Below, one piece after another: positions 79 through 64,000 of a stretch of DNA of 64,000 nucleotides. This stretch comes from Thalia democratica. Lineage: Eukaryota. The notes under the pieces are model-generated. The model ran no database searches. It saw only the letters and a program-made list of their open reading frames with translations, and was not told where the DNA came from. Position numbers and translations under genes: made by a program. The stretch covers positions 28,210,001 through 28,274,000 of the forward strand of contig OZ241828.1 in the NCBI GenBank assembly GCA_965202585.1, given 5' to 3'. The number at the start of each line of letters is the position of its first letter. The stretch's first letter is position 1.

Positions 79-79
79 T

Positions 80-9003: not shown

Positions 9004-9015
9004 AAAACAAACCAC

Positions 9016-9330: not shown

Positions 9331-9529
9331 TTTTACTACACCACTTTTACAAGTGGTTTTAAAATTTGCAGATATTGCAGTCAAATTAAATTTAACTTAT
9401 ATATTTATATTAAAGATTATCTATATACAAACATAAATTATACACTTATTATGTTTGCAAATAGTTCTGCCTCTAAAGGCGTTTGATCACTATTCTTGAG
9501 CAGTTTTAGTTTTATTTTGTTAATAATGT

Positions 9530-9665
9530 AATGACAGTGCAAAATTCCTTGCATTGTCATTGTTTTGAAGAATATTTAGAGTTAGATACGCTTCAATGCA
9601 CAAGCCAATGAGAATCATCTGATGTAATGTTGAAAATAAAGTACTGATGCAACGGGGCGTCAAGG
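9530..9665. promoter_or_regulatory. Pol II promoter-like block (13-bp-stem hairpin, CCAAT box, GGGGCG box); copies near 19150-19300 and 41425-41555
   Basis: AATGACAGTGCAA/TTGCATTGTCATT at 9530-9561, AGCCAATGA at 9603-9611, GGGGCGT at 9654-9660, retained in three copies. Confidence 0.3.
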
Positions 9666-10158
9666 GTGATAGTCAGTTTCATGTAAGCAGTGAGTTTAGT
9701 TTTGGTGTGCAGCTAAAAGCAACAACAGATATCTTGAACTTTTTGTGAATGCTTATTATAATTATTTTTTTGTTTTAAAAGTGAATATTTCAACTGTGTT
9801 TAATTGTTTAAGTATTTAAGCCAGGTTTATAGTTTAAAAGTTTATAAAACCTTTTACAGTATCTTGTCTACTAAAAGTTTAATTTAATTTTTAGTTTATT
9901 GTTTTAAGTCTTTTGATTTAGATTTAAATAGCTTGTAGTTTCTTAAAAGTTTGTATTAGTAATTTATAGTTTTGTATATGCTAGTATTTCTTGTTGTGTT
10001 TTATATAAAAGATTAATCACTTAAAACTGTTATCTGTATAAGCAAGTTTACAATAACTGTTGTTTTATTAGTTATATTACTAATACTACAATTACTAATA
10101 AATTAACTTAAACATATTCAACTGTTAAGAATTTTACTAACTTGCTTATAGCGTAAAT

Positions 10159-10675
10159 CAGTGGTCGTAAAGGTGTACACTGGTGCACACTAAAGTATAC
10201 GAAACTTTTTTTGGGGTGCACGAAATTTTTAGGATACACAAAACTCATTTAGGGGTGCACAAAATTTTGAGATTACAAAAAAAAACATAGAGTTAGATTA
10301 AGTATATAGTTAATATTTAATAAAGTATTTAAAGAATACTGAACTGGGGATTTTGTAATAGTTGTTGATAGGTCTTCAATTAATAAGTATGTAAGACAAA
10401 GCCATATAACTAAAATATAATTGTGAAAATAAGGTATAACAAATAAAGAGGTCAATTAAAAAGAGGATCAAACAAAAAGTTTAAGCTTCAGTTGTTTAAT
10501 GGTTTGCATGTAAACACAAGCTGAGTTATGAATTTTAAAGAGAAATCCACTAATAAAAGTGTTTAGGTAGTCCAACCACTAGAGGCGCTTATAAAAATTA
10601 GATCTTGGGGTGCACAGATTTTATTTTTTTTTGCAGCTTGGTGTGCACAGAATTTGATTAGCTTGACGACCACTG
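10159..10675. mobile_element. hAT-like MITE, 517 bp
   Basis: TIRs CAGTGGTCGT/ACGACCACTG (13 of 15 on extension); degenerate 8-bp TSD gcgtaaat/gcctaaac; subterminal GGGGTGCAC-type motifs near both ends. Confidence 0.7.
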
Positions 10676-13280
10676 GCCTAAACACAATATACAATACGCA
10701 AACGGTTCAAACCAATTTTTTGAATGTTTTTGTACGTTATAAACTTCTGATAAATATTTTTGAAGGTGTTGGTTTCAATCAATACTACATGTTTATTTTT
10801 TTAAATTGTTGAAACTTTTACTATTGTAGCTAAATAGTTTTCTGTTTAATAAACCACTGTTACTAAGTTATTAAAACTAAAACTTCAAACTGTTTTATAA
10901 TTCCAATAAAACGTCTCTAGTGCCTGTAATTTCATACAATAAAATTGCCTAAAACTTTAGCTTTCATTCATAAATAGTAACATTTTACAAATCTAAATTG
11001 AAATATTTATGGTCACAGTACCTGTGCAATTTTGAAACCACTTGTAAAAGTGGTAAAAGTAGAAACTCATTTATTTAAAAAACAGAAAATGATAAAAAAC
11101 CTTTTTCTACTGAAAATAAATATATATATATCAGTGTAAAATATTCAATAGTTAGTCACTTTTCAACTAGTTATTGTTATTATGTTAAATGTTTGTATAA
11201 GAAGTTGTGTCTCCTTTTAACAAAAATATAATTTAAACATTTCCAAGCATCATTTTTTCTTAGTAGAAACTTAATTCTGTTTATACATAAGAAATATAAA
11301 CTTAGTTAGATGTTTAATTTTAAATTAAATATTCAATATATTGCTACTTAAAAGGCAACATAGTATTTAAAGCTTATTTCTCTTAAAATATTTATAATAA
11401 TTTGAACATTTTGTAAAACTGACAAAAAAAAAGCAACACAGTTTTTCTAGTATTTAAGAAAGCATTATTTATTAGTATTTTCCAAAACAAACTTACCCTT
11501 TAGCATTCATCAAAAATTGAAAAATTTTAAATTGCTATAAATTTTCTTTATGTTTTTTTTTTTAATTAGAAAAGTTTTATTGAAAACTAGATTTGAAAGT
11601 CTATTTATAAGAACTAGATTAGTAGTAGATAAATCTAAATAAATAATTTTTTTATCAGTTAAAAATTACTAATAAAGACTAAATGTTTTTTTATTTAATC
11701 AAAAGCTTTATTAATTTAAGGTTACAAAACTTTAGTTATAACAAAACAGTTATATTTTTTATTATATATTTTTTTGTAATTAATTTTTAATGCTTTATAA
11801 TAATATCATAAGATCATCACTTTATTCACTTTAAAACAAAAACTTTTAGTAATTCTCATAAATAACTGATATTAACTGACTTAAACTAATACTTAAGCAT
11901 TCTTAAGAGTTGAGTTAAAATGCCTCTAGTGTCACTAATTGCATAAAAGTAATTGAGTAAAATTTTAGTTTTTGTTAATATCTAGTCAGTAATTAAAATA
12001 TCTATTGTTGCATTATTCGAAATTTAACTTCTTACTAATTTTGAAACCACTTATAAAAGTGGTAAAATAAAATCTTATGTAATTATATATATAGAGAAAC
12101 GTTTTCAAAACACGTCTTTTACCGTTAATAATTAATGAGGCAAAATATATTAAACACTAGTTATTTTTAAATCCAAAAATAATATAACATAACTTTTCAA
12201 AATAAAAAAAGTGAATCTTTTCCTTACCATAGTTCAATAAATTAATAGACTAAAAATAATAAGTAAACACTAAACCGCAATCATTTTTTTTTTGTACACT
12301 TGTATCTGAATCAATTAAATCTTTCTTTTTTTTGTCAGTGTATTTGTCAAGAAATTTTAGAAACTTACTGATTTTTTGTCGGCATATTGTAGATTTTTAT
12401 ACTGACCAGCCTAATTAAATATGAATCAAAATATTATTGCTGGAGAAATCAAGTCTTATTGGTTACAATTATTTTTTTATGTCGACCAAACAGGATTGGC
12501 AGTACTCAGCCTAAACGAGTTACCACTCTCAGATACATGATTAAGTGTTATAACAAAGAGGACCAAAGTTGAAATGAAAAAATGTTTTTACTGCTATTTA
12601 CATGCCAGTTTAAATTCTCATATAAATATGAAAGGGCCTACATTTTGAAAACTTGTTCAAATCTTATAACGTTTTAAATACTCATGTCTAATCAGTAAGA
12701 CTATGATTGTGAAAAATACTCTAAATTATGTTTTAGTTAGATTACTTACAATAACACACAGCTACTTGAATTTTATTGCATCCGTTACTTATCAATAAAA
12801 GTTTTGCTAATCAGAATTTTTTGAAATTCAAAAAAGTCTCGGGATAAATCAGGATATTTTGAATTTTTTTTAAACTCGAAAAGCTTAGAAAAATCTCAGG
12901 ACTATTTCGAAACTTTGTTATTCTATATAGCCAATTTACTAAGAAATGCTTATATAAAAGTTTTTTTCACTTAACGTAGAAGTTACACTGTATTTTTTTA
13001 ATTTTTATTGAAAATTACTTTTATCATGGTTTAAGATTATATTAAACAGTATGTTTAACTATAATTCAAGTGAGTGCTTTATGTGGTAAGATTAAAGTTA
13101 GTCAAAAATAAAACTATTTTCTGTCATATATAATGTAAACTAACAGTTATCGACAATTTTTGTTTTTAAACCTCAATTAATCAAAACTTTTATCGTTTTA
13201 TCTTAGAAAAAGTACACCTCATAAGTTTAGTGAATGTTATACACCTGCAACCTTTCTTATATTTATTGAGAACAAAAATG

Positions 13281-13495
13281 AACGTCCTAGTGGATTTACA
13301 ATCTCCCTCTGAAAAAACGACCAATCCTTACAAGGTTTACAATCTAATGCACATCGCGCTAACAAGAGTGCTAGCGGCTAATCTCATTCTTATATACTTG
13401 CGTAGTCGTCTCCATAAACAGCGACCACCGGGACTCGGACTCTGGACGTAGGGCCAGCAGTCGCAGAGGCAGACCGCTGGGCCATACAGGCGCCC
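13281..13495 (-). mobile_element. tRNA-derived SINE-like element with intact head (copy 2)
   Basis: Minus strand reads GGGCGCCTGTA-TGGCCCAGCGG (A-box, 13484-13474), 31 nt, GAGTCCGAGTCC (B-box-like, 13442-13431). This is pol III type-2 promoter spacing. Confidence 0.65.
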
Positions 13496-13720
13496 GTCTG
13501 TCTACTCTAATTACAATACATAAACCATCAATTTTCAAGAATCACTGTAAAAAAGTTTCATTGCAATTAAAAACCACAAATAAAAAGCATAAGGTTTTAT
13601 ATAAATATTGTGTGAAAAAAAGGAATTACTATTTAGAAACAGATCTTCAAAGAACAAAAAAGTTGGCGCTGGACAGCCTGCCTGTTTGATTTCGGCTGCC
13701 GATCCTGCGTACCAAGTTCA

Positions 13721-13901
13721 CGTCCTAGTGGATTTACAATCTCCTTCTGAAAATCGACCAATCCTTACAAGGTTTACAATCTAATGAAGATCGCGCTAAC
13801 AAGAGTGCTGGCGGCTAGTTGCAATTTTATATACTTGCGTAGTCGTCCACATAAAGAGCGACCACCGGGACTCGGACTCTGGACGCAGGGCCAGCAGTCG
13901 C
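13721..13901 (-). mobile_element. tRNA-derived SINE-like element, 5'-truncated copy 3
   Basis: Homologous to copies 1 and 2; truncated at the same point as copy 1 (gcagtcgc|aaaaacaaaccacaat). Confidence 0.6.
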
Positions 13902-13914
13902 AAAAACAAACCAC

Positions 13915-16900
13915 AATGATGTTCAAGAATAGTAAAGTAACTATGATCATAAAGACGATTATCAGAGTAAGTTAGGTAACTATGATCCCAAAGACCAGTG
14001 TTGTTAAGAAAACTAAGAGTATTAAGAGGACGACTAAAATTGTTTACAAAACTATAAGCATCAAGAAAATGACCAAGGTTGTTAAGGTAATTATAAACAT
14101 CAAGAGAACAACCTGGGTTGGTAAGAAAATATTAGCATCACGAGGTATTTAGGGTTGTTAAGGTAACTATGAGTGCTTTGAGGATGACAAAAGATACTAA
14201 GATAACTATATACATCTAGAAGATGACCAGGGTCGCTAAGTAAACTATTAGAATCAAGAGGATGGTAAGGATTGGTAAGAAAACAATAAACATCAAGAGT
14301 ATAATTACGGTTTTTAATGAAACTTTGAATTGTCAATAAGATGACCAGGGTTGTAAAGGAAACTATGGTGATCAAAAGAAGTATGATCATCAAAAAATGA
14401 CAAGAGTTGTTATGGTAATTACGATCATCGAGAAGATAATCAGAGTTGTCAGGGAAACTATGATTATCAAGAGGATGACTAGGGTCGTTAATGTAACTAT
14501 GATCACCAAGAGGATGAACATAGTTGTTAAGGTAACTACGATTACTAAGTGAAAAACCGGGATGGTAAAAAAACTTTGATCACCGCGAGGATGATCAGTT
14601 TTAAAGAAACTATGGTTGTCAAGAAGATGAAAAAACCTTTTATTATCAACAGGGTGACAAAGAATGGTAAGGTAACTAACATCAACAAGAGTATGACCAA
14701 GGATGGTAAGGTAATTGTCATATTTTAGAGGATGATCAGGGTTGTCAAGGTAACTATGATCATCAAGACGAAGACCAGGGTTGTAAGGTAACAATGATAT
14801 CAAGATGATGACCAGGGTCGTCAATGTAACTATGATCTTTAAGCGGATTATCGGGTTGTTATTGTAACTAATATAATCAAAATGATGACCAACGTTGTTA
14901 AGGTAACTATGATTACCAAGATGATGACCATGGTTGTTCGGTAACTCTGAGTATTGTAAATATAATAAAGGTTGTTATGGTAACTATGATCATCAAGAGG
15001 ATGACCAAGGTTGTCAAAGTAACTATAAGCATTAAGAGGATAACCATGGTTGCTAAGGTAACTATGATCATCAAGAGTATGAAAGGGGTTATCAATGTAA
15101 TTATGAACACCAAGAGGATGAACATAGTTGTTAAGGTAACTAGATCACCGATCGAATGATCAGGGTTGTCAGATAACTATTATCAACAAGAGAATGATCA
15201 GGGCTGTTAAGATAAATAAGATTACCTAGAGAATGATCAGGAATGTTAGGGAAACAATGATAACCAAGAGAATCATCAGGTTGTTAAGGTAACTATGTCC
15301 GCCAAGATAATGATCAGGGTTGTTAAGGTAAATATGATAACCAAGATTATGATCAGGCTAGTAAAGATATGTATAATAACAAAGAGTATGATTGAGTTAT
15401 TAAAGTAACTATAATCAACATGAGAATGATCAGGGTATTTAATGTAATTAAGATCACAAAGAATGAGCAGGTTTGTTAAAGTAACCTTGATAACCAAGAG
15501 AATGATCAGGAATAATAAGATAACTATGATCACCAATAGCATGATCAGGGTTGTTAAGGAAACTATGATCACCAAGAGATGAAACTTGGTTGTTAAGGAA
15601 ACTATGATAACCAAGAGTGTGATCAGGGTTTTTAGTACACTATGATCAACAAAAAATGATTAGGGTTGTTTAGGTAAATATGACCACCAAGAGGATGATC
15701 ATGAATGTTAAGGAAACTGTGATCACCAAGAGAAGAATCAGGTTTGTAATTATGATAACCAATTCAATGATCAATGTTGTTAAGTCAACAATAATCATGC
15801 AGCGAAAGATCTGGATTGTAAAGGAATCTTTGATCAACAAGAAAATAATTAGGTTTATTAAGGAAATTATGATCACCAAAACAGTGATCAAGTTTACCAA
15901 GGGAACAACTATCATCTAGCAAATGATTAGATTTGCTAACATTACACATTTCCATAGCTAATTTCATAACACTGTGATCACCAAGATGATGACCATGGTT
16001 ATTTGGTAACTCTGAGTATTGTAATTATAATAAATGTTGTTAAAGTAATTAAGGTCACCAATAGAATGATCAGGTTAGTTAAGGTAACCTTGATAACAAA
16101 GAGAATTATCAGGTAAGATAAGGTAACTATGATCACCAAGAGTATGAACAGGGTTGTTAATGTAACAATCATCATCAAGCGTATGATAAGGGTTGTTAAG
16201 GTAACTATGATTACCAGGAGAATTATCAGGTTTGTTAAGGTTAATATGAAACCAGAGGATGATTAGATTTGTTAAGGTAACTATTATCACCAAGAGCTTG
16301 ATAAGAGTTGTTGAGGAAACTATGATCAGTGAGAGAATGATCAGGTTGTTAAGGTAAATATGATAACCAAGATTATGATCAGGCTAGTAAAGATATGTAT
16401 AATAACAAAGAGTATGATTGAGTTATTAAAGTAACTATAATCAACATGAGAATGATCAGGGTATTTAATGTAATTAAGATCACAAAGAATGAGCAGGTTT
16501 GTTAAAGTAACCTTGATAACCAAGAGAATGATCAGGAATAATAAGATAACTATGATCACCAATAGCATGATCAGGGTTGTTAAGGAAACTATGATCACCA
16601 AGAGATGAAACTTGGTTGTTAAGGAAACTATGATAACCAAGAGTGTGATCAGGGTTTTTAGTACACTATGATCAACAAAAAATGATTAGGGTTGTTTAGG
16701 TAAATATGACCACCAAGAGGATGATCATGAATGTTAAGGAAACTGTGATCACCAAGAGAAGAATCAGGTTTGTAATTATGATAACCAATTCAATGATCAA
16801 TGTTGTTAAGTCAACAATAATCATGCAGCGAAAGATCTGGATTGTAAAGGAATCTTTGATCAACAAGAAAATAATTAGGTTTATTAAGGAAATTATGATC

Positions 16901-18975
16901 ACCAAAACAGTGAACAAGTTTACCAAGGGAACAACTATCATCTAGCAAATGATTAGATTTGCTAACATTACACATTTCCATAGCTAATTTCATAACACTG
17001 TGATCACCAAGATGATGACCATGGTTATTTGGTAACTCTGAGTATTGTAATTATAATAAATGTTGTTAAAGTAATTAAGGTCACCAATAGAATGATCAGG
17101 TTAGTTAAGGTAACCTTGATAACAAAGAGAATTATCAGGTAAGATAAGGTAACTATGATCACCAAGAGTATGAACAGGGTTGTTAATGTAACAATCATCA
17201 TCAAGCGTATGATAAGGGTTGTTAAGGTAACTATGATTACCAGGAGAATTATCAGGTTTGTTAAGGTTAATATGAAACCAGAGGATGATTAGATTTGTTA
17301 AGGTAACTATTATCACCAAGAGCTTGATAAGAGTTGTTGAGGAAACTATGATCAGTGAGAGAATGATCAGGTTGTTAAGGTAACAATGATGATCAAACGA
17401 ATGATCAGGTTAGTTAAGGCAACATTGATAACCAAAAGAATGATCAAGTTTATTAAGGTAACAATGATGATCGAACAAATGATCAGGTTAGTTAAGGCAA
17501 CAATGATCATCGAGCGAATCATTAGCTTTGTAACATAACAATAATCACTAAGAGAATGATGAGATTTGTTATAGTAACTATAATCACCATGAGGATGATC
17601 CGGAATGTTAAGGAATCTATGTTTACCAAGAGGATGATCAGGGTATTTAATGTAATTAAGAACACAAAGAATGATTAGGTAGTTTATGAGTGTTAGGGAA
17701 ACTGTGATCACCAAGAGAAGAATCAGGTTTGAAATTATATTAACCAATATAATAATAAATGTTGTTAAGTCAACAATAATTATGCAGCGAAGGTCAGGAT
17801 TGTTAAGGAATCTATGATCACCAACAAAATTATGAGGTTTGTTAAGGAAACTATATCACCAAAAGAATGATCATGTTTGTCAAGGTAAAAATTATCATCG
17901 TGCGATTGATCAGGTTTGCTTATATAACAATGATAACCATGAGAATGTTTAGGGTTGTTAAGGTAACTGTTGTCACCAAGAGCGTGATAAGTGTTGTTAA
18001 GAAAACTATGATTACCAAGAAAATGATCAAAGTTGTTAAGGTTACTATGGTCAACATGAGAATGATCAGGTATGATAAAGTAACTATGATCTCCATTAGT
18101 ATGATCAGGATTACTAAGGTAACTATGATCACCAAGAAAATGGTCAGGGTTGTTAAGGTAAGAATCATCATCCATCATATGATAAGGATTGTTACGGTAA
18201 TTATGATCATCAAGAGAATAATCAGATTGTTAAGGTTAATGTGATCACTAAGAAATTTGTCAGGGTTGTTAAGGTTACTATTATCATCAAGGGGATGACC
18301 GAAGTTCGTAATATAAATATGTTCATTAAAAAGATGAACAGGGTCGGTAAGGAAACTATGATTAAAAAGAGAATAATCAGGGTTGTTAAGGAATCTATAA
18401 TTACCAAGAAAATAATCAGGGTTGTTAAGGTAACTATGATCTCCATTAGCATGATTAGGATTACTAAGGTAGTTATGATCACCAAGAGAATGATCAGGGT
18501 TGTTAAGGTAACTATGATCACCTAAAGGATGATAAGAGTTGTTAACGAAACTATGATCACCAAGAGAACGCTCACGGTTGTTAAAGTAAATATGATCATC
18601 AAGAGAATAATCAGATTGTTAAGGTTAATATGATCACTTAGAAGATTATCAGGGTTGTTAAGGTTACTATTATCATCAAGGGGATAACTAAGGTTGTTAA
18701 TATAACTATGATCATCAATAAAATAACCACATATTGTAAGGTAACTATATTAAAAAAAAGAGAATAATAAGGGTTGTTAAGGTAATTATGATCAACAAGA
18801 GGATGATCAGGGTTTTTAAGTTAACAAAGATCTTTAAAGGATGACCAAGGTTTTTAAGGAAAGCATGATTATTAAGAGGATTACCAAGGGTAATAAAAAA
18901 CTACGAGTACTTAGAGGATGATCAGGGTTGTTAAGGTAACTATTAGCATTAAAAAGATGACCAGTGATGTTAAGG
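13915..18975 (+). repeat. 39-bp minisatellite array 2, about 5 kb (roughly 130 units), with an internal 1026-bp near-perfect tandem duplication
   Basis: Consensus repeats throughout. 15318-16343 is repeated at 16344-17369; paired ORFs in the track are offset by exactly 1026. Confidence 0.95.
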
Positions 18976-19769
18976 AGTATTTATTATACCACTTTTACAA
19001 GTGGTTTTAAAATTTGCAGATATTGCAGTCAAATTAAATTTAACTTGTATGTTTATATTAAAGATTATCTATATACAAACATAAATTATACACTTATTAT
19101 GTTTGCAAATAGTTCTACCAGTTTGATCACTATTCTTGAGCAGTTTTAGGTTTATTTTGTTAATAGTGTAATGACAGTGCAAAATTCCTTGCATTGTCAT
19201 TGTTTTGAAGAATATTTAGAGTTAGATACGCTTCAATGCACAAGCCAATGAGAATCATCTGATGTAATGTTGAAAATAAAATACTGATGTAACGGGGCGT
19301 CAAGGGTGATAGGCAGTTTCATACAAGCAGTGAGTTTAGTTTTGATGTGCAGCTGGAAGCAACAACAGATATCTTGAACTTTTGTGAATGCTCATTGTAA
19401 GTATTGTTTTGTTTTAAAAGTGAATATTTTAACTGTGTTTAATTGTTTAAGTATTTAAGCCAGGTTTATAATTTAAAAGTTTGTTAACCTTTTAAAGTAT
19501 CTTGTCTACTAAATGTTTTATTTAATTTTTAGTTTATTGTTTTAAGTCTTTTGATTTAGATTTAAATAGCTTGTAGTTTTTAAAAAGTTTGTAATAGTAA
19601 TTTATAATTTTGTATATGCTAGTCTTTCTTGTTGTGTTTTATATAAAAGATTTATCACTTAAAACTGTCTGTCTACTTTATATAAAGTAGCCTAGAGTAG
19701 TATTTAGTGTTTTATATATGTTGTCCACTGATAATTACAAATTAGCACTTATAAATTAGTTATAGTACT

Positions 19770-49951: not shown

Positions 49952-51224
49952 TTAATTTAATAACTATTAATTAAAAAACATCTTGAAATGAGTTTAATTT
50001 TATCTGTAATTTTTAACTTAATAAGTTTTTATTTCACCACTTTTTCAAGTGGTTTTAAAATTTACTAGACACTGTAATCAAAATATATTTGACTTTCTTT
50101 TTATCATTGGTACTCGTATATATATATACAAACTGAAATCTAAACACTCATTTTGTGTCAAAATACTTTTACCACTAGAGGTATTTGATTGCAATTTTAA
50201 TCATGTTACAGTTTTATACTAATATAATAACAATGGCTGTAGTTAGATTTAATAAACTAATATAACAACCATACTTATTCAATATAAAGTGTAAAAAAAT
50301 GGAAAGCCTTCAAGGTAGTACGACCAAAACCATTCTTCTGAAAACTTTAATTGAAAAAATTATCAAATGGTACTACTATTGTGCGTATATTACTAGGGGA
50401 CACGTTCAAAATCGACACATTATAAGTTTATCTATCAACAGCTGTTATCTGACGAAAAACTTCAAAGACATATTTATTAAAATTTTTTTATACTTGTTTA
50501 AGATTTATTAAGTAGTATTGTCTACTGATGTCTTTTAATTATAGAACTAAAACAACTTTTTCATTTTTATATGCTATGAAAGGTCAGTCTACATTTAAAC
50601 CAAAATTCAAATAATTTTACTTCATAATCTTGAATACATGATGAATGAAAAGGGTTGGTGAGGAAACTTGGGGCACTAAAAAGTGACCCGGGGTGATTCT
50701 AATATAACCCAAACAACAATGATTAGGGTCCCTGCTGATCTTGTTTCATACCATTAAACAGCAAAAATCATTGACTCAAAAACACACTGAAACTCACAGC
50801 CAAATCAAACAAAATATAAATTAACAATATCTCAAAATAACAAGTGAGTGAACATATTATAAAATATTTTTTTTTGTAATATACACATTATCGCAACTTT
50901 AATTAACAGAAACACACGTTTTACTTAGAGACCACTACTAATTGCTTTAAAAGACTATCATAATATATTTAAGAAAGTTTAATGATTAGTTTTAGTGACA
51001 ATTAATAAAAGCTGATAATTTATTTGATTTATTTTAAGACACTTAGTTTGACTTTTAAGGCAAATCGTAATCGTACTCTAGTTTTAGTTTTATTCATATT
51101 ACAGTATTTAGTTAACAGTGATTTTTATTAACTTTAATACTAATAAAAAAAAACTTAGCAGTTTTGTAATATAAAGATGTTTAATGTTGTTGTTTAGTAA
51201 TATGATGATTAATAACATTTTAAT
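49952..51224 (-). repeat. Inverted duplicate of the ~25740-27005 module
   Basis: Reverse complement of 25740-27005, including an inverted A-B unit at 50036-50186. Confidence 0.9.
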
Positions 51225-52914: not shown

Positions 52915-53402
52915 ACTTTACTATCATTGTTACCCCTAACCTTTACCCTCGGTCGGTAACTTTTTTTTTTCGTTTTTAATTATCTTTTTATTTTTATATC
53001 ACTGTTACCCCTAACCCTTACCCTCCGTGATTATTTTTTTGATTTTTTAATTAAAATGCATTTTTATTTATTTATTTTATTTTACTATTACTGTTACTTT
53101 TTACCCTTACCCTCGGTCAGTAACTTTTTTTCTTTTTTGATTTTTTTTTATTTATCCCTTAGTCTTTTTTCCTGTTTTACAAATACTTTTATTCTTATTT
53201 TTTTTTACTCTCGTGCAAAAATGTAATACTTGCAAAATTTTCCCTTGGTGTATAATTGTCTTCGTGCAATTTTGTGCCCTCGTGCAAATTTTTCTTCATG
53301 CAAAACTATCTTTGAGCAATTTTATCTTCGTGCAATTTAGTCCCATCGTACAGTTTAGTAACCTCGTGCAACTTTGTCGTCGTGCAATTTTGACCGGTTC
53401 CC
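52915..53402. mobile_element. Second copy of the CGTGCAA-repeat element, with an expanded ttacccctaacc-taccctcgg block
   Basis: Homologous to 27940-28260; the taccctc(g/c)g block occurs three times here versus once in the first copy. Confidence 0.4.
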
Positions 53403-53880
53403 ACCTTAACAACCATGATAATCCTCTTGATGATCGTAGTTTCCTTACCATTCTTGGTCATTCTCTTGACACTAATAATTTCCTTACCAACCCTTAACAT
53501 CCTCTTGATGATCACAGTTACCTTAACAACTTTGGTCATTTAGTTGTTTTACAGAGTTTCCATAGCAGCCCTGGTTATTCTCTGAGCGTTCATACATTCC
53601 ATATCAACCATGGTTGTCTTCTTGATTTTCATAGTTACCTTAACAACTTTTCTCGTCTTCTTGATTATCGTAGTTACTTTAACAACCTAGGTAATCCTCT
53701 TTGTCATCATAGTTACCTTAGTAACCCTGATCATACCCTGATGATCATAGTTACCTTAGCAAACCTGACCATTCTCTTGGTGCACATAGTTTTTATATTA
53801 ACCTTGTTCAACTTTTGGTGCACAAAATTTACTTACAAACCCTGGTCTTCCTTTTTGGTGCGAATATCTTTTTACCAACC
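53403..53880 (-). repeat. 39-bp minisatellite array 8, inverted (duplicate of array 4)
   Basis: Reverse-complement consensus; same flanks as array 4. Confidence 0.9.
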
Positions 53881-56800
53881 GTATTAATCCATTATATATT
53901 GAAGATTAAAAAAATCTCAGATTTTGTTTAAAATGTAAACTAAGTTTCTATAGCACATAAATAAAAAAGTTATTTTAGTTCTACAATTAAAACAACCTAA
54001 AGGTTTTAGAATTTAATAAAATTTAAACAAGTATACAAAAAAATATTTAATATGTATTTGAAGTTGTTCGTGAGGTAATAGCTGTTGATAGATAAATATA
54101 CACACAAAAGTAATACCGTTTGATAATTTTTACGAGTAAAGTATTTTGAAGAAATACTTTTATAATGTTGCCGGAAAGGCATTCCATTTATTTACACTTA
54201 AAATTTGCACAAAATATATTCGTTTTATTAATTTAACAAGACTAACTAAAACCGTTATAAGTAAGTAAAATTAAAACTTCGACACGATTAGAATCGCAAT
54301 CAAACACCTATAGTGGTTAAAGTAGTTTCAAACAAAATAAGTTTTTAAATTTTAGTTTGTATATAACCGCTATTATGATAATAAAAACAAAATCAAACAT
54401 GTATTGTTTACAAAATCTAGTGAATTTAAATACCACTTAAATAGTGGTGAAGCACTAACTCATTAAATCAAAAATTATAAATAAAATAAAACCTTTTATA
54501 TAAAGTTAATGAAACTATTTTATACACTTAACGTTTAAATGATAAAATATAAAGTAATTTAATATATTTTATTAACATTATTTTCATTACTTTTTAATCT
54601 ATCAAACAATAAATTTTATATAATGTTAGTCATGTAAAATTTTATATAACTTTAAGTTAAATGTTTCTTAAAATGCTTCCAAAACTAAAAGTTTGACATT
54701 TTTATTGTTTTAAAAACAATCTTTTCGATACTATCACTTTAAACAAACATATTGTATTTAGATTTATTAGCAGAAATATTTAGATCTTTATTCTAATATT
54801 AATAAAGTTAAGATAATTTGTTCATGCACACTTTAGAAATACATAAGAAAATACAACACTGCTTTTAGTCAATCGAAGTTTAAATTCTTTACGAAGTGGT
54901 TTTAAAATAAAATATATAAATAATAAAGTTGTATTAGTTCTACAATTAAAACACATCAGTAGGTTTTACTGTAAAAATATAGTTTTTGAAAGAAACTACT
55001 TAAAATTTAACGTTTCTCAATATAAATTTACTATACAATTTTTTCTTAAGAATATTACTATTTATAAGAAGTACATAAAAGTAATAAAAGTGTATTTTCA
55101 GTTGCTAATTATTCATTATATTCTAGCTAATCTATACACTAAGTCCATTATTAATAGACTAAAACTGAAACTTTTGTATAGTTTGGAGTTGCAATAAAAT
55201 GTCCCTAGTGTCTATAGTTGAGCAAAAAAAAATTAACTAGTTTTTAGTTCATATTTATATTTATTCAGTGTTGAAAAATCTTAATTGAAATTTTGTGGTC
55301 ACAGTACCTGTGTAATTTTATAAGGCACTGAATAAAACATTACTGAATAAAGCATTACTAGAATTTTCGGTTTAGATTTAAACATAACTAATCATTAAAG
55401 TTAAAGTTTTCTATAAAATATTTTGATAAAAAAATTATGTTTTTAAACTTTTTGATCACAATTTGTACTTATGTTAGCCATTAACAATAGCTAAATAAAG
55501 TTAAACATTTTATAAAGTTTTTTTAAACAAGCCACGACTGAAACTACAAATACTTATTCAATTTGTAAAACACTTAAAAGTTGATGGTAATAAATCACTG
55601 ATTTTTATAAGACCTTTTCTTTCTTTTGGTCCACTAATTTAGCATGAAAAATTTAATTAGTTCTAACTTACTTTCTTAAAAGTTTCTTAGCTACTAATAC
55701 TATAAACAAATATACTGCATTTAGATTCATTAAGTGAAACATTTAGAACTTTGTTCTATATAAATAAAGTTAAAATGATTATGTTTATGTCAACTTTAAA
55801 AGTAAATAAAAAAATAAAACATTGGTTTTAGTCAATTAGAGCTTAAATTCTTCTCAAAGTAACTACAATAGAATATTAAAACAAAGTTTTTGTAAGAAAC
55901 TACTGAATTTTTAACGTTTCTCAACAAAAATTTACTACTTAAAATAGTTGTTTATAATTCTACTATCAGTAAGAATTACAAGTAACCAAAGTTGGTTTTT
56001 CTTGCTAATAGTTAATTGTATTTGAGCTGACTACTAATCTAGAATAAAACTAAGTCCATTCATAAGTGACTAAAACAAAATTTTTGGCATAGTTAAGAGC
56101 TGAAATGAAATGCCTCTAGTGTCTATAGTTGCACAGAAAATATTTGACTATAATTCTAGTTCATATTCATATTTATCAGTATTTACAAGTTTTTAGTTAA
56201 ATGTGTAGAGAAGACAGTATCTGTGTAATTTTAAAACCACTTATAAAGTGGTAAACTAAAAATTCATTTAATTAAAAATTTCGAAACTGACAATTATAAA
56301 AAAAAACGTGCTCTAATAATAAAAAATATCAATATAAAACATTCAGTGGGTGAAAACGCCTCTAGTGTCAGTAGTTGCATACAAAATAATTAAGTACAAT
56401 TTTAGTTTATATTCATATTTAGTAAGTATTTACAGATTTAACTTTGATTATGTCATTTTCAACCTGTGTAATTTTTGAAAGCACTTGAAAAATTGATGAA
56501 ATAGAAAACCATGAAATTCAATAATTAGAAAAAGAATGGAAATAAATAAGTCTTTTTCTATCAATGATAATTGTATACTAGTAAAATGTTTTATTAGGTG
56601 ATTTAGTGTTATAGCTATTTTTTTATTGAAGTAAAACTAGTCATTACTTTTATTTCAATCTGATGTTTAACGTTGTCTACGTTAATATATATGATACTTA
56701 CGGAGAGGTAACACTAAGAAAAATAGTAAAAGTTTAGACTTTGGTTTTACACAATAGTAATATAGGTTTTAATAAAAGTCATTTAACAGTTTAAAGTAAC

Positions 56801-58669
56801 TATTGAACCATTTACTTAACTTTTTATAACAAAGTTTGTTAAAAAGTATTACAAACTAATGTTTTCATAGTTTTTGCAAATAAGTTTTGCTTTTAAATTT
56901 TACACCTTGTGCAACAGATTTTATGGCAAACTAGTTCACAATTTATAACTATAAACCAATTACTTATAAAAGTCAAGCGTGGTTTCCAATACAGTGTTCG
57001 AACTTTTTAATTTCTGATTATTTTTAAACTAATTAAGTTCTGTTGTTAAAATACTTTTTATAGCACAAAATGTTTTTTTAGTTAATTTTTACAGTTTTAA
57101 ATAAAATATTTAAAGTTAGTACTTAATTTGACTTATCTAGGTAAGCTTAAATATTGAGTTTTATTTTTGTTCTGCTAAAGAGTACAAATTACAAGTTTGA
57201 TTATATGATAAAATAAAATTTTATAAAAAAACGTTTGTATATATTAAATTTGCAGTGATTTTAGTGTGCTATATGTAGTGATTTAGCTTAAACAAAGCAT
57301 TATTAGTAATAAAATTATTATGATTATCTTTTTATTATAATGTTAATTTTAAGTGATATGTCTAATTATGTTTTGGAACAATTTTAAATACTTACTGTAT
57401 TATCAACTATATCACTTATACCAATCAAATTAACAGAAACAAGCTTTAATTAAAATCGGTAAGAATTCTACTAACTTCAGTTTTATAGAATACTTACCAA
57501 AACATTACCAACACCTTTTGTTTAGATTTAAACATAACTAATCATTTAAGTTAAAGTTTTCTATAAAAAACATTGTTATAAGTTTTTTTGTTTTAAATTT
57601 GTTGATCACAATTTGTACTTATGTTAGCCATTAAAAAAGGACTAAATATAGTTAAAAATTTTAAAGCGTATTGTTTTAAGAGCCACAACTGGAACTGCAA
57701 ATACTTATTCAATATTTTTTTGCAGTTGTACAACTGTTCGCAGTTGTAAAGCATTCAGAAGTGGATGGTAATAAACCACAAATTTCTGTAAAATATTTTC
57801 TTTATTTTGGTGCATTGATCTAGCATGAAAAATATGATTGGTCTTTAACTTATTTTACTGATATTTCCTTAGATACTGTTACATTAAAAATTATATTTTA
57901 TTTAGAATTATTAAGTGATATCTTTAGAATTTTATTCTATATAAACAAAATTAAAATGATTTGATTATGTACACTTTAAAATTACGTAAGAAATCAAACC
58001 ACTGCTTTTAGTCAACCGGAGCTTAAACTCATCTTAAATTTATTATAATAAAATATAGAAATATAGTTTTTGAAGGAAACTATAAAAATTTCAACGTTTT
58101 TCAAGAAAAACATACTGCTTAAAATTGTTATTCATAAATTTTATTATTAATAAAAACTTCATAAAAAAAAAACCGAAGTTTATTTTTATCGGTTAGTAGT
58201 TCAGGTTAGTAGTAGCTGACTACTAATCTATACAATAAGTCCATCAAAAAATTTACTAAAGCTAAAACTTTGGCATAGTTAAAAGCTGCAATGAAATGTC
58301 TCTAGTGTCTGCAGTTGTGCAGAAAATAATTGACTAAAATTTTAGTTCAAGATCATTTTTAGTCAGCATTTACAAAATCAAAATTCAAATTTTCGTGGTC
58401 ACAGTACCTGTGTAATTTTAATACCACTTATAAAAGTGGTAAAATGGAAACTCATTTCATCAAATAAACAGAAAACTGAAAATGATAAAAATCTATTTTT
58501 TACTGATTATAAATAAACCAACTAGATTAAACACTCAGTTAGTGATTTTGTTTTTTAGACTGCTATTTGTTTTTTTTTTAATTTGAAGGTGAAAATAGTC
58601 TTTGCTTTTGCATTTTGTTGATGTTTGGTGAAATAACAGTAACCTGCTGCTTTCATTTTATAACACAGT

Positions 58670-59285
58670 TGATCAGGTAACTATAATCACCAAGAAGTCA
58701 TATTATTTGTTAAAGTAACAATTATCACCAAGAGAATGATCAAGCTTGTTATGGTAACTATGATCACCAAGAGAATGGTCAGTTTGTTAAGGTAACTATG
58801 ATCATCAAAAGAGGAGTCATATTGTTTGTTAAGGTAACTATGATCATCAGAAGAGTCATATTGTTTGTTAAGGTAAAAATGATCATCGAGCGTATGATCA
58901 GGGTTGTTAACATAACAATGATCAACAAGAGAATGATAAGGGTTGTTAAGGTGACTATTATCACCAAGAGAATGATCAGGGTTGTTAAGGTAGCTATCAT
59001 CATCAAGAGAATGATCATGGTCGTTAAGGTAACAATGATCATCGAGAGATTCTTTAGGTTTGTTGAGGTAACTATGATCTTTAAGAGAATGATAAGTTTG
59101 TTAAGGTAACTATATATCCAACAGAAGGACCAGGGTTGTTAAGGTAACTATAAACATCAAGAAGATTATCAGGAATTTTAAGTTAACTAAGATCTTCAAA
59201 AGGATGACCAATCTTGTTAAGGAAAGTATGATCATTAAGAGGATTACCAAGGGTGGTAAAAAACTATGAGCACTCAGAGAATTTT
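58670..59285 (+). repeat. 39-bp minisatellite array 9 (duplicate of array 5)
   Basis: Same variant units as array 5 plus extra units. Confidence 0.9.
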
Positions 59286-62200
59286 CTATTTTACCACTTT
59301 TACAAGTGGTTTTAAAGTTTGCAGAAATTGCAGTCAAATTAAATCTAACTTAAGTCTTTATATTTAAGATCAATTATATAAATACATAAACTTTACACTT
59401 ATTTTATTTGCAATTATTTATGTCGTTAGAGGCGTTTGATCACTACTCTTAAGCAGTTTTTGTAAAGTTAGAAATGTTAGCATAAGTAGTTTTTTTTACG
59501 CTGTACCACTATGCTGCGGTTAACGGTAGAGAGTTGATTCCTTTTGTTCTCTTCTCTCAAATTATTTTATTTTGTAACCAGTAAATGCATTTGAAGATGA
59601 CTTTTTTGGCTTTTTCTGTCGAGGTTCCTTTTTGTTTTTGCTTTAGTTTTGGGTTTTTTTTTTATATGCAAGCATGAATTTTTTGTTAAACATCATTACT
59701 AGCGTAACGATAACAATCGTTTTTAAATTAAGTTGTTTAGCTCAAGTATTATATTTTATATTATTGAGCTAGTATAGTTTGTTGTATTTTTTTGCACATT
59801 AATCATTGTAAATAATATAGGTTATTTACGGCCTTATAAAGCTACTTTAATTAAACAATAGTATAAGTTCAATTAACTCTTATAAACCTACTATATTAAT
59901 TAGCTAAGTCAGTCTAAACATTAGCTTAAGAATGAACTTCGTATTTAATTATATACTAGCGCGTTATAGTCAGTAGCCGTCAGGCTAGCGTTACATATAT
60001 AACTAAGCATTTATCTTAAGACGGTTTAACGCTAGTAAAATAACTAGAAGTTACGCAATTCTATTCTATCAATGGCTTCAAGTTTACACTAAAAAAGCTA
60101 TTTCATTAACTTTTTTTATGAAAATAAGTTATATTGTGTTGATCCATACAGTTTAGTTAATATTATATGGTTAACTAAATTTTTCATTTTACTGGTTTAC
60201 TACTATATCTATCGTGATTATTTCCAACCCGATCATATCGAATTCAATTGTTTTTATCCCGATCAGTAAAAATGCTATTATTTTTAGCCAAAACAAAAAC
60301 TGCTTAAGACTTATAGTTAAACGCCCCTAGTGATACAACTAATTGCACACAAAATAAATTTTAATTTGTATATTTTTATTCATTAGTATAAATTATTAAG
60401 TTCAATTCGATTTAACTGCAATATATTCAAATGCTATTATCATCATATTATTAAACAATAACATTAAACATATTTATATTACTGCTAAGTTTTTTTTTAT
60501 TAGTAGTAAAATTAATATGTTTAATGTTAACTAAACACTGTGTATGATAAAATTAAAACTAGAGTACGATTGCTATTTCCTTAAAAGTCTAACTAAGTAT
60601 TTTTAAATAAATTAAATACATTATCTGCTTTTATTAATTGTCACTAAAAGTTATCATTAAACTTTCTTAAATATATTATGATAGTCTTTTAAAGCAGTTA
60701 GTAGTGGTATCTAAGTCAAACGTGTGATTATTTTTTTTTCAGTTTATTAAAGTTGCGCTAATGTGTTTATTACAAAAAATATATTTTATAGTATGTTCAC
60801 TCACTTGTTATTTTGATATTTTTTAACTTATTTTTTGTTTGATTTGGCTGTAAGGTGTGTTTTTGAGTCAATGAGTTGTTGCTGTTTAATGATATGAAGA
60901 AAGATCAGTCCTTGTTGTTTGTAACTATATAAGAAACAACCCCAGTCAATTTTCAGTGCCCCAAGTTTCCTCATCGAACCTTTTCATTCATTATATATTC
61001 AAAATTATGAAGCAAAATTATTTGAATTAGTTAAATTGTATACTGACTTTTAATAGCATATAAAAAAATGTTTTAGTTCTTCAATTGAAACAATCTAAAG
61101 GTTTTACAATTTAATAAAATTTAAACAAGCATACAAAAAAATAGTTAACATGTATTTGAATTTTTTTGTCAGGTAACAGCTATTGATAGATAAACTTATA
61201 ACATACGTATAGAAGTAAAATCATTTTATTATTTTTTTAAGTGAAGTTTTTTGAAGAAATGCTTTTTGTAGTATTGCCTAGAAGGCATTACATTTATTTA
61301 AAGTTTCATAAATCCTGTTTGTTTTATTATTTTATCAAATCTAACTAAAGCTTTTATTATTAACTAGAAATAAAACTGCAAAACTATTAAAATTGCAACC
61401 AAATGCCTCTAGTGGTAAAATTAGTTTGACACAAAATAAGATGTTTGTATATGTACAAATGAGAGCACTAGTGAAAGAAAGAAAGTCAAAATTTTTTTTG
61501 ATTACAGTATCTAGCAAATTTTAAAACCACTTGAAAAGTGGTAAAGCAAAGATTAGACTAAGAATGTATAAATAAAAAAAAAACATATTTTAAACTTTTT
61601 CACAATAAATAATTATTAAGTTGAATAAAAAAAATTATATCTTTAATATTTACATAATATAAAGATTTTTTTGAAATACTATATTTTATATTATCAATCG
61701 TATCTAAAGTTTAGAAACAATAAATTTTTTATAATTTAAGTCGTTACAAAATTCGTAAAAATTTTTATTAACTTTGTTTTTTAATTTTAAATTAAAAAAG
61801 TTTTCCTTTTATTTATTAAATTTTATGCATAGCACAAAATAACTGGTTGTTCACTACTTTTGGATATAAGAATCTGAAATATTTATTTATAAGTGTGACG
61901 TGAGTTTTATTACAGTTTGCAGTGTTTTTTAAGGCTGCTAGTTTTAAAACTAATTGAGTCCTGTTGTTAAAAAAACTTCTTATTTTTTATTATTTTATTG
62001 GTAGTTTTTTTTTACAGTCATAGATAGAATAATCTAAGTTAGTTCTTAATTAAACTTATCAAGTTAAACTTAAATGTTGAGTTTTAGTTTTGATATGCTA
62101 AAGAATATAAATTACAAGTTTAACTACACGATAAAATAAATTTTAAGAAAAACGTTTATATATATAAATTTGCAGTGAATTCAAATGTACAATATGTAGT

Positions 62201-64000
62201 GATTTAGCTTGATCAGATCAATATTAGTAATAAAACTTTTATGATACACTTTTTTTATTAATGTTGGCTTTAAGTGATCTCTATACTCATGCTTTGTATC
62301 AGCTTTAAAAATTTACTGCACCTTTAACTAAATCACTTATACTAATGTGATTAACTAAAATATATTTAAACGACAGTTGGTAAGAATTGTACTAACTTAG
62401 TTATAGAGTACTAACTAAAACATTACTAGCATTTTTGGTTTAGATTTAAACATAACTAATCATTTTGCTAAAGTTTTCTATAAAAGAGTTTGATAAAAAA
62501 AATTTGTTTTAAGGTTTTTTTCACAGTTTGTATTTATGTTAGCCATTAAGAATAACTAAATATAGTTAAACATTTTATAACGTTTTGTTAAACAAGCCAC
62601 GACTGAAACTACAAATACTTATTCAATTTGTAAAAAAATCAAAAAAGAATGGTAGTAAACCACTGATTTTTATAAGACCTTTTGTTTCTTTTGGTGCATT
62701 ATTTTATCATGAAAATTTTAATTAATCTTCAATTTACTTTGTTAAAATTTTCTTAACTACTAATACTTTAAACAAATATGTTGTATTTAGATTCATTATA
62801 TGAAACATTTAGAACGTTATTCTGTATTGTTAAAGTTTAAATTATTATGTTTATGTCAACTTAAAAAGTAAATAAAATTTTAAACACTCGTTTTAGTCAA
62901 AAAGAGCTTAAATTCTTCTCAAATAATTTCAACGAAATATTAAAATATAGTTTTTGTAAGAAACTACTAAGTTTTAAAGTTTCTCAAAAAAACTTTACAA
63001 CTTAAAATTGTTGTTGTTAATTCTATTATCAGTAAAAATTACAAGTGACTGAAGTTGATTTTTTGTTGCTAATAGATAATTATATTTGAGCTGACTACTT
63101 ATCTAGATTAAAACTAAGTCCATTATTAGTTGACTAAAACTAAAACTTTGGCATGGTTAAGAGCTGAAATGAAATGCCTCTAGTGGCTATAGTTGCGCAG
63201 CAAATAATTGACTAAAATTCTAGTTCATACTCATATCTAGTCAGTATTTACAAGTTTTAAGTTTAATTTGTCGAATAGACAGTATCTGTGAAATTTTAAA
63301 ACCATTTCTACCAGTGGTAAATTAGAAACTCATTTAATTAAATAAATTGAAAACTGATAATGATAAATAACCGTGTTCTAATAATAAAAAATATCAATTG
63401 TAAAGCATTCAGTGGGTGAAAACGCCTCTAGTGTCAGTTGTTGCATACAAAATAATTGAGTAAAATTTATGTTTATAAAATTTTAAGTAAGTATTTACAG
63501 ATTATATTTTGATTATGTAAGTTTCAACCTGTGTAAATTTTGAAAGCACTTTAAAAAGTGGTAAAATAGATAACCTTGAAATTAAACAATTAAAAAAGTA
63601 TGCTATATAAAAATACTTTTCTAAAATAATATTTTATACATAACAAAAAAAACATTGGGTGATTAAGTGTTATAGCTAATTTTTTTATTGAAATTTTTTA
63701 TATTTTATTATAGCCTTTACTTTTGTTTTATTCTGATGTTTAACTAAACCAAAAATATATAAATTTAAGATACAATTGGTTGAATCTGTACTAACTTGTT
63801 TATAGAATACTTACCAAGCATTACTAGCACTTTTGGTTTAGATTTAGACATAACTAATCATTTAAGTTAAAGTTTTATATAAAAAAATATTGTTATGTTT
63901 TTTTTGTTTTAAATTTTTTGATCACAATTTGTACGTATGTTAGCCATTAAAAAAATGAACTAAATATAGTTAAAAACTTTATAACGTTTTGTTTCAAGAG

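Follow-up and report, generated by a model that had tools for sequence, protein, structure and literature searches.

The window, a stretch of 64,000 nucleotides of Thalia democratica DNA, contains an ancient non-coding repeat with a unit length of about 250 bp. We show here that this repeat was originally a head-to-tail tandem monomer and that it owes most of its copies to a macrosatellite unit of ~7-8 kb, which carries it six to seven times and was itself duplicated. Two blocks of the repeat exceed the neutral conservation level of its flanks; the ~60 bp that separate them drift freely. The two-box repeat may represent either a very small RNA gene or a site bound by protein. Of the functions listed in the first-pass annotation, the best match to the conservation profile is a candidate promoter of non-coding transcripts. 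A search with nhmmer and a 213-column core profile recovers 44 homologous copies of the ~210-bp core between positions 9322 and 63580, and none in positions 1-9300. The core reaches from ~45 bp upstream of the first box (box A) to ~165 bp downstream of it, hence homology extends beyond the boxes; the repeat comprises about 210-250 bases, and ~250-300 bp when a tail of ~100 bp is included. The first alignment had been seeded on box A, and re-collection with the whole-core profile added copies in which this box is degenerate. No open reading frame of at least 150 amino acids occurs anywhere in the window.

The two-box signal itself is real. Box A (AAAYGCCTCTAGTG) has 40 matches in the window with up to two mismatches, compared to 0.41 expected from shuffled sequences, and the exact hairpin B (ACCACTT-N3/4-AAGTGGT) has 21 against 0 expected; an extended hairpin, AATTTTRAAACCACTT-N3/4-AAGTGGTAAA, is matched exactly 11 times, likewise with 0 expected. 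With one mismatch permitted per hairpin arm, a hairpin B starts 121-136 bp downstream of box A at 30 of the 40 sites. The earlier count of about 30 copies is correct in that 30 units carry both boxes, but as evidence it was overstated, since only 7-9 lineages are independent. The motif AGTG(G) is indeed common to all three half-sites, as noticed before. The earlier reading of a near-fixed, nucleosome-sized span is not supported, and we see no sign of a nucleosome. From the start of A to the end of B we measure 139-153 bp, most commonly 145-147. The spacing differs by up to 15 bp between lineages, and gaps are equally frequent within the core (1.5%) and outside (1.5%). The near-constant span is hence explained by shared ancestry, and the spacing looks inherited. 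Nor is an obligatory pairing of A and B supported, because they were lost separately in some lineages: S6 has lost B in four of five copies and retains A with 1-3 mismatches, while S5 keeps B intact and has a box A with 1-2 mismatches or, in the copy at 18970-19160, an 8-bp deletion.

Self-comparison reveals about six copies of the macro-repeat that are 84-94% identical, and a ~25-kb duplication of the array (19.9-38.4 kb against 43.3-63.7 kb). The element order within the macro-repeat is fixed as S1-S2-S3-S4-(39-bp array)-inverted S5-S6, with units 0.25-2.3 kb apart; an example of 8.2 kb (34886-43101, forward strand) consists of S6, S1a, S2, S3, S4a, the 39-bp array and inverted S5c. The copies fall into 13 clusters at 86% identity, with 7-9 deep, old lineages. 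Homology between lineages mostly ends ~40-75 bp before A on the 5' side, and related lineages have 0.6-1.2 kb of flank in common. Box A of S1 starts at 20928, 29087, 36073, 44305, 54302 and 61401. The S1 copies have ~900 bp of upstream flank in common and comprise the core copy at 20884-21091 (forward strand, delimited by the core profile), S1a (36029-36236, 44261-44468, 61357-61552), S1b (26742-26943, 50018-50221 on the minus strand, 51709-51905) and S1c (29043-29252, 54258-54466). S2 is found at 22666-22875 (forward strand; box A at 22711-22724, A-rich box at ~22738-22749) and at 30850-31058, 37818-38028, 46021-46231, 56063-56271 and 63127-63337. Head-to-tail behind it follows S3, at 22926-23118 (forward strand), 31099-31311, 38080-38271, 46290-46475, 56315-56516 and 63388-63580, with an A-to-A distance of 243-249 bp. 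The tail of S2 doubles as the head of S3, an arrangement indicative of an ancestral tandem monomer of ~250 bp. S4 has a core copy at 23344-23553 (forward strand), further S4a copies at 39981-40190 and 46700-46909, S4b copies at 33037-33245 and 58250-58457, and degenerate copies without B at 29938-30122 and 55152-55336. Each 39-bp array borders at its right end on the inverted S5, which has a core copy at 24541-24738 (minus strand) and further copies of the types S5a (47836-48031), S5b (33945-34132, 59276-59462) and S5c (9322-9521, 18970-19160, 41221-41416). About 880 bp beyond S5 lies S6 (25567-25737, forward strand; others at 34950-35103, 48880-49047 and 60283-60438), with an S6b copy at 43164-43347. 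The 39-bp minisatellite itself occupies 23739-24520 (forward strand) between the convergent S4 (plus) and S5 (minus); other arrays are located at 14000-18960, 33494-33910, 40421-41062, 47109-47772 and 58707-59241, and reversed arrays at 28370-28586 and 53404-53792. Beside a reversed array sits a partial copy with only the 3' half (27619-27742, forward strand; twin at 52593-52717). Two solitary forward-strand copies lie outside the macro-repeat, one of S2/S4 type (10864-11073, core profile) and one with a perfect A and a perfect B (11873-12081).

With relatedness controlled, the boxes are more conserved than spacer and flanks, as the first-pass annotation had proposed, with box A in the top 2% in two lineage comparisons and box B in the top 3-5%. 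For box A this retention is seen on old branches as well as in the youngest duplicate, for box B only on old branches. Tree-aware counts for box A are 0.86 changes per site on deep and 0.71 on recent branches, compared to 2.22 and 1.46 elsewhere in the core (P 8e-5 and 0.009). In the youngest duplicate, whose copies are 94% identical and were aligned in pairs without gaps, box A has 4 mismatches in 238 sites (1.7%) against a background of 5.7%, with ~13 expected (permutation P 0.009, GC-matched P 0.016). Between S2 and S4 its identity is 0.95, within the top 2% of 14-mers from the 1.1 kb of shared flank, and in the comparison of S1a, S1b and S1c it ranks in the top 1.9% of flank windows. Box B has 1.23 compared to 2.22 changes per site on old branches (P 1.6e-4) and reaches the top 3.4% and top 5% of flank windows in the two old lineage comparisons. 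In the youngest duplicate neither box B nor, by permutation, the whole A-to-B domain has a significant deficit of changes. Spacer, head and tail are no better conserved than the flanks (0.70-0.72 compared to 0.74, S2 against S4). In each of the two lineage comparisons the fine profile resolves into a pair of conserved blocks with a variable segment between them, and the A-rich box is conserved at 0.94 in S1 and 0.89 in S2/S4.

Block 1 spans -40 to +45 bp relative to the start of A and holds TAAAACT, box A and the A-rich box (GCA.A.AAAATAA, 27-38 bp after the start of A). Box A, exemplified by the S4a copy (AAATGCCTCTAGTG, 23388-23401, forward strand), is the slowest-evolving 14-mer of the unit. 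The variable stretch of ~60 bp that follows can be aligned between lineages and has consequently drifted rather than being unique to each copy. Block 2 (110-165 bp after the start of A) contains a small stem, AATTTTRAAA, the 7-bp hairpin B and AAANTAGAA. In S4-type units an Sm-like AATTTTGA (23508-23515, forward strand; AATTTTAA in most copies) sits between two small hairpins. The first, CACAG-TAC-CTGTG (23494-23506, forward strand), directly precedes this U-rich site in S2/S4; S5 has a different small stem, TGCA-ATATC-TGCA, and RNAalifold does not recover the small stem across all lineages. The second is hairpin B (ACCACTT-GTAA-AAGTGGT, 23517-23534, forward strand), the sole helix predicted across lineages, with its arms kept as sequence. 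Directly behind it lies AAANTAGAA (23535-23543, forward strand), which diverges by 2.7% in the youngest duplicate (P 0.06) and agrees at 8 of 9 positions with the core of the vertebrate snRNA 3' box.

The best fit for this layout, which we favour only tentatively, is a small snRNA-type transcription unit. Each unit would be, or would once have been, self-contained, with box A serving as an upstream promoter element (~60 to 48 bp upstream of the start site) and the A-rich box as a TATA-like element (~32 to 24 bp upstream); transcription would begin ~60 bp past the first position of box A. The predicted RNA of ~90-100 nt would combine a 5' part that is free to vary with a constant 3' tail of stem, U-rich Sm-like site and terminal hairpin, and AAANTAGAA would act as 3'-end signal; many copies have probably decayed. 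Genes for Sm-class snRNAs, SL RNAs and U7-type RNAs have an upstream PSE, in some lineages a TATA-like box, an Sm site between stem-loops and a 3' box. Similarly, the repeat is small (~160 bp), a conserved upstream box and an A/T-rich box precede the beginning of the variable stretch at roughly the expected distances, and a U-rich AAUUUUGA/AAUUUUAA lies just before the terminal 7-bp hairpin, with the conserved AAANTAGAA immediately behind. Both distances would agree with the PSE and TATA positions established for snRNA genes in general. Several observations speak against an snRNA-type unit. Unlike the known genes, the repeat matches no Rfam snRNA, SL or U7 model, nor any other Rfam family even at a permissive E-value, and it has neither a CRE octamer nor a Ciona-type spliced leader; a tRNA is likewise absent from it. 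Most copies read AATTTTAA and lack the G of the canonical Sm site, and RNAalifold reveals no compensatory changes in hairpin B and no other helix shared across lineages. Further points are the missing deficit in box B and the A-to-B domain in the youngest duplicate, the independent decay of A and B in S6 and S5, and T runs inside the predicted RNA that would stop RNA polymerase III. Three sequencing runs (type unknown, same samples or study) contained nothing from the repeat region.

Somewhat doubtful, in our opinion, is a DNA-level cis-element without its own RNA product, in which the palindromic B is bound by a dimeric sequence-specific protein and A by the same or another protein. Such sites could be architectural, boundary or enhancer-type elements, comparable to the CENP-B box in alpha satellite or the CTCF sites in DXZ4. 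The arm centres of ACCACTT/AAGTGGT are ~11 bp apart and the half-site AGTGG recurs in box A. In line with protein binding, both B arms are kept as sequence without compensatory change, A and B are retained around a neutral spacer, and each persists without the other in some lineages. A 13/14 match to box A at 10577-10590, within an unrelated MITE-like element (chance estimated at ~0.014), suggests that the motif is a recognition target by itself. Satellites with a protein-binding box (alpha satellite, DXZ4, D4Z4) also have diverged monomers inside a much more uniform higher-order repeat and retain a short box while the monomer drifts; the units described here, in contrast, are not contiguous. 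However, no known binding motif is matched, and a full NK2-type TCAAGTGG was seen, by reading, only in the S1 loop variant. Arms spaced by either 3 or 4 nt, as in B, would be uncommon at a fixed dimer site; B also lacks recent constraint, and two half-site motifs alone leave the conservation of the A-rich box and AATTTTRAAA unexplained. Box A as a CTCF site, as in DXZ4 and D4Z4, is ruled out, with no copy within 3 mismatches of the consensus.

It seems improbable that the unit is what remains of a non-autonomous mobile element of the MITE, SINE or Helitron-like kind, with A and B as copying signals. The boxes would then look conserved because only intact copies founded lineages, which now multiply passively with the macrosatellite. 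Such a founder filter predicts that B is conserved on deep branches and not in the youngest duplicate, as observed, but the box A deficit persists in this duplicate, which is non-transpositional. The 5' limit of homology also speaks for a relic. No terminal inverted repeats or target-site duplications were seen, and there is no tRNA-like head. As in foldback or DINE-1/Helentron-derived elements, a minisatellite is enclosed by inverted units of ~200 bp, which resemble long terminal inverted repeats, and a short hairpin lies near the array. Unlike in those elements, dispersed copies were not seen and the inverted pair always has the same macro-repeat context. A single array context is common to all 44 copies, related lineages share long flanks, and the S2-S3 pairs are plain head-to-tail monomers. 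In run X1, DNA contigs are spread evenly over the whole 4 kb and are not enriched at the A-B units. We also regard it as unlikely that the repeat is a decaying satellite monomer without function, whose G+C-richest segments appear falsely conserved through alignment anchoring, seeding on box A or biased gene conversion. The excess conservation is indeed modest (a factor of 2-3 for A, less for B), the whole domain fails the permutation test, spacing is unconstrained, the three sequencing runs contained nothing from the region, and the first alignment was seeded on the box in question. Against this, the whole-core profile added degenerate-A copies, and box A passes the GC-matched permutation in gap-free duplicates where alignment error is negligible. 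In an AT-rich genome G/C sites are expected to change faster, and outside the boxes they do (3.34 deep changes per site against 1.95 for A/T); moreover, two separate lineage comparisons agree.

The two retained blocks of the unit, one around box A and one around hairpin B, are statistically supported, and the feature is real and non-coding. Box A, AAAYGCCTCTAGTG, has 40 matches in the window at up to 2 mismatches, where 0.41 are expected, and the hairpin ACCACTT-N3/4-AAGTGGT is found exactly 21 times against an expectation of 0. Its extended form, with AATTTTRAAA before and AAA after, still gives 11 exact matches in the window, again with 0 expected. A B hairpin starts 121-136 bp downstream in 30 of the 40 box A sites (1 mismatch per arm allowed), so that the pairing of both boxes was accurately described in the first-pass annotation. 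When the units are aligned together with their flanks, homology is seen to run through the whole unit, beyond the boxes, and a 213-column profile recovers 44 copies of the core of about 210 bp, every one within 9.3-64 kb of the window. The copies follow a constant order, namely the unit lineages S1, S2, S3 and S4, a 39-bp minisatellite, inverted S5, and S6, in a macro-unit of about 7-8 kb that occurs about six times at 84-94% identity. Inside the macro-unit the different lineages have only the core in common, found as weak local alignments; related lineages have 0.6-1.2 kb of flank in common. Local alignments between lineages start mostly about 40-75 bp before A and end just after B or about 250 bp past the A start. 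S2 and S3 stand head to tail at an A-to-A distance of 243-249 bp, the tail of one being the head of the next, which makes a tandem monomer of about 250 bp the probable ancestor. The higher-order repeat is more homogeneous than its monomers, as defines a satellite or macrosatellite. The youngest duplicate of the array, about 25 kb long, relates 19.9-38.4 kb to 43.3-63.7 kb at about 94% identity. Clustering at 86% identity yields 13 clusters, and the deep lineages number 7-9. Given these few lineages and their common flanks, the effective sample is about eight sequences: the earlier count of about thirty copies holds for A-B pairs (30, within 44 core copies), but not as thirty independent cases. 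The span from A start to B end is 139-153 bp, most commonly 145-147 bp, and had been taken as a near-fixed, nucleosome-sized spacing. This we do not uphold, since the A-to-B offset differs by up to 15 bp among lineages, through an indel of 3 bp directly behind A and, in S1, an insertion of 8-10 bp, and gaps in the youngest duplicate are equally frequent inside and outside the core (1.5% each). The near-constant span is therefore accounted for by common descent, and nothing ties it to a nucleosome.

The proposal that the boxes are kept better than their spacers withstands modelling of copy relatedness, moderately for A and, for B, more weakly and as an old effect. Tree-aware parsimony on 42 long copies, with deep and recent changes counted per site, gives 0.86 deep (P 8e-5) and 0.71 recent changes (P 0.009) for box A, 1.23 deep (P 1.6e-4) and 1.31 recent changes (not different) for box B, and 2.22 and 1.46 for the rest of the core. 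Beyond the boxes, changes are more frequent at G/C than at A/T positions (3.34 vs 1.95 deep changes per site), and hence the keeping of the G+C-richest segments opposes the mutational trend. The youngest duplicate is a comparison with unambiguous alignment. Here 4 of the 238 box A sites compared are mismatched, that is 1.7% against a background of 5.7% (gap-free-window permutation P 0.009; P 0.016 against windows with at least 5 G/C), and box B lies at background, with no deficit. Constraint over the whole domain from A to 10 bp past B seems significant in this duplicate by a simple binomial estimate, but not by window permutation (P 0.29), and is not claimed. The best-controlled test uses lineages with long common flanks. 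Between S2 and S4, which have 1.1 kb of flank at 74% identity in common, box A reaches an identity of 0.95 (top 2% of flank 14-mers) and the 30-bp B block 0.88 (top 3.4%), while spacer, head and tail stay at flank level (0.70-0.72). In the comparison of the sublineages S1a, S1b and S1c, A belongs to the best-kept 1.9% and B to the best-kept 5% of flank windows. When both lineage comparisons are combined by Fisher's method, in our own arithmetic, A reaches P ~0.003 and B 0.013. Thus, retention of a box above the rest of the monomer is clear for A; for B it is seen only on old branches.

A conservation profile in 10-bp steps, computed for S2-S4 on matched copies and leaving out S4 copies that lack the long common flank, divides the unit into three parts in both controlled comparisons. 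The first block begins about 40 bp ahead of A, ends about 45 bp past the A start and contains TAAAACT, box A and an A-rich box, GCA.A.AAAATAA, at 27-38 bp after the A start (identity 0.94 in S1 and 0.89 in S2/S4). It is followed by a variable stretch at about 50-110 bp, and by a second block at about 110-165 bp that comprises AATTTTRAAA, hairpin B and AAANTAGAA, preceded in S2/S4/S5 by a small stem. The constant tail of the unit is AATTTTRAAACCACTT...AAGTGGT. Hairpin B, whose loops are mostly GTAA or GAAA, is the sole helix that every lineage shares. The arms retain their sequence, and among lineages they show no compensatory change; RNAalifold returned hairpin B alone and no covariation, so that a conserved RNA of several helices is rejected. 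About 30 copies have the 3' hairpin, and the 5' stem is restricted to S2/S4/S5. A and B can decay independently: S6 has kept A with 1-3 mismatches and lost B, S5 has a perfect B and an A with 1-2 mismatches or an 8-bp deletion, and S3 has kept A with a damaged left arm of B. No consensus structure was found for the tail after B. Downstream of B we also observed an inverted repeat, AGTAGAA(A)...(T)TTCTACT, with its arms about 45 nt apart (23535-23590, 11055-11112 and 22857-22920). It pairs over 7-8 bp in the S2, S3 and S4 lineages, is not above chance in S1, and has one compensatory pair, G-C in S4 and T-A in S2.

The succession of a promoter-like block, a free stretch and a constant tail can tentatively be read as the layout of a small snRNA-type gene, the likeliest of the interpretations considered, though possible rather than probable. 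The A-rich box would serve as the TATA-like element, some 30 bp ahead of the start site, and the variable stretch would begin at this predicted start. The proximal sequence element usually lies about 60 to 48 bp before the start, and an A-rich box acting at about 30 bp upstream would put box A just there, in the role of that element. The distance of box A from the beginning of the variable stretch is compatible with a proximal sequence element about 55 bp upstream. A U-rich Sm-like site followed by a terminal hairpin might then close the RNA, with the AAANTAGAA block past the RNA end as a 3' box-like element. This block agrees in 8 of 9 positions with the core of the vertebrate snRNA 3' box, a consensus that may not be the one of this species. 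Among the 11 exact matches to extended B, 4 read AATTTTGA and 7 read AATTTTAA, the latter being the form of most copies overall. Compared with the Sm-class snRNA site, RAU4-6GR, most copies lack the G of the consensus. This missing G, the lack of recent constraint on B, the partial uncoupling of A and B, the absence of covariation and the negative outcomes for Rfam, CRE octamer and spliced leader given below are evidence against the snRNA-type reading. The unit would work most like an snRNA-type mini-gene or a satellite box and is a proven member of neither. It is rather unlikely, in our estimation, that the units are individually promoted genes for Sm-like RNAs of about 90-100 nt, whose 5' part drifts and whose tail is constant, and that they form one more branch, with a promoter box of its own, of a very large salp-specific population of snRNA-type mini-genes, an undescribed class of abundant tunicate small nuclear RNAs. 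If the units are transcribed, they would be a new family with a different promoter box in a perhaps very large set of pelagic-tunicate small-RNA mini-genes; to our knowledge, no such set has been described. Known RNA classes gave no assignment. Rfam at gathering thresholds had 0 matches in the whole window, which contains no bona fide snRNA gene, and a permissive search of 20.8-24.8 kb and 8-14 kb returned only a chance-level match to mir-1175. The latter is dismissed, as its two weak matches lie on the tail just after B, which folds no better than shuffled sequence. The CRE octamer TKACGTCA is absent from the whole window, so a CRE-driven snRNA promoter is rejected. So is a Ciona-type SL RNA gene: the 16-nt spliced leader with GT donor has only matches with 3 mismatches, 7 against 5.4 expected, none in a unit. 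Contigs of X5-X7, runs of unknown type, have only chance 40-base matches to the region.

An explanation by two predicted protein-bound DNA sites, A and the palindromic B, is likewise unlikely, although several observations fit it. The arms of B are retained as sequence, both boxes persist independently, and a 13/14 copy of box A lies inside an unrelated MITE-like element at 10159-10675, for which our own chance estimate is about 0.014. However, no known motif fits. A CTCF-type insulator is rejected, since every box A copy differs from the CTCF consensus CCASYAGRKGGCRSY at more than 3 positions; the reverse of box A, CCACTAGAGGCATTT, follows it for 10 positions and is then one G short. If A and B are protein-binding sites, the hunt for the factor in a macrosatellite-rich genome could start from a defined 14-mer and a palindrome. 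Somewhat less credible still is a transposon relic, in which propagation signals look conserved through founder effects. The keeping of B only on old branches would suit such a relic, as would a genome of mostly unclassified repeats, as reported for Salpa in a paper that does not describe the unit (PMC10686999). However, terminal repeats or target duplications were not noticed at the homology limits, all copies in the window are in one array and none is dispersed, and box A is still constrained in a duplicate that did not arise by transposition. The contigs of the public run X1, which are DNA-like, cover the 4-kb test region uniformly over its whole length, and the A-B units attract no surplus of them. 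This speaks against the existence of a separate dispersed element in high copy number at 80% identity or above. To neutral decay combined with artefact we assign the same low probability; the effects, modest as they are, survive the controls for relatedness, G+C and flank. Should the unit be neither an RNA gene nor a binding site, it would be an example of how 30-44 copies come down to 7-9 independent lineages with inherited spacing.

Several further identities were tried. A tRNA-derived SINE or an RNA polymerase III type 2 unit is rejected: ARAGORN found 0 tRNA genes in the window and Rfam gave no tRNA match; by reading, only AGTGG of box A fits the A box TRGCNNAGTGG, and no B box GGTTCGANNCC follows. 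A coding exon is unlikely, as the window has no ORF of at least 150 aa and the unit has stops in all three frames. In a candidate internal exon, with CTCTAG as 3' splice site and GTG/GTAAA as 5' splice site, the stretch upstream of CTAG is A-rich on reading, without a pyrimidine tract, and conservation extends 30-35 bp inward from both ends. The A...B pattern had three unrelated chance matches in public metagenomes, and the literature has the strings of the box motifs as primers alone.

The window, AT-rich with a G+C content of about 25%, contains further elements. The 39-bp minisatellite forms its largest array at 14000-18960 and others at 23739-24520, 33494-33910, 40421-41062, 47109-47772 and 58707-59241, and in reversed orientation at 28370-28586 and 53404-53792. 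The arrays have up to about 125 units, matching at about 65-75%, and no long ORF, although the consensus unit is open in three frames; it contains AAG/GTAAC, a good 5' splice-site match. Each array of the macro-repeat lies between a forward S4 and an inverted S5, both pointing inward. The MITE-like element (517 bp) has terminal inverted repeats of 14 bp, CAGTGGTCGTAAAG, with a complementarity of 93%, and the motif GGGGTGCAC recurs in it; its box A copy, AAGCGCCTCTAGTGG, is on the minus strand at 10577-10590 in unrelated surroundings. A G+C-rich element has three minus-strand copies (8800-9010, 13270-13500 and 13720-13910), two of them immediately left of a 39-bp array. Two tRNA-like motifs, an A-box TGGCCCAGCGG that is complete in the 13.3-13.5 kb copy alone and a B-box GAGTTCGAGTCCC, make it probably a tRNA-derived SINE; neither ARAGORN nor Rfam called a tRNA in the three copies. 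Just left of the first copy lies a G+C-rich island at 8116-8665 (35% against 25% for the window), in which Rfam found nothing at E up to 1. Two ORF fragments on the minus strand, 1372-1695 and 3670-3969, show a motif like that of carbohydrate sulfotransferases, RHPLERLVSAHYSKF, and probably represent exons of the one protein-coding gene that can be seen in the window. A further, unrelated tandem repeat of 218 bp occupies 85-872 (3.6 copies, 80% matching), and an 89-bp tandem repeat at 52973-53137 (1.9 copies) contains a telomere-like stretch, CCCCTAACCCTTACCCT, far from the chromosome ends.
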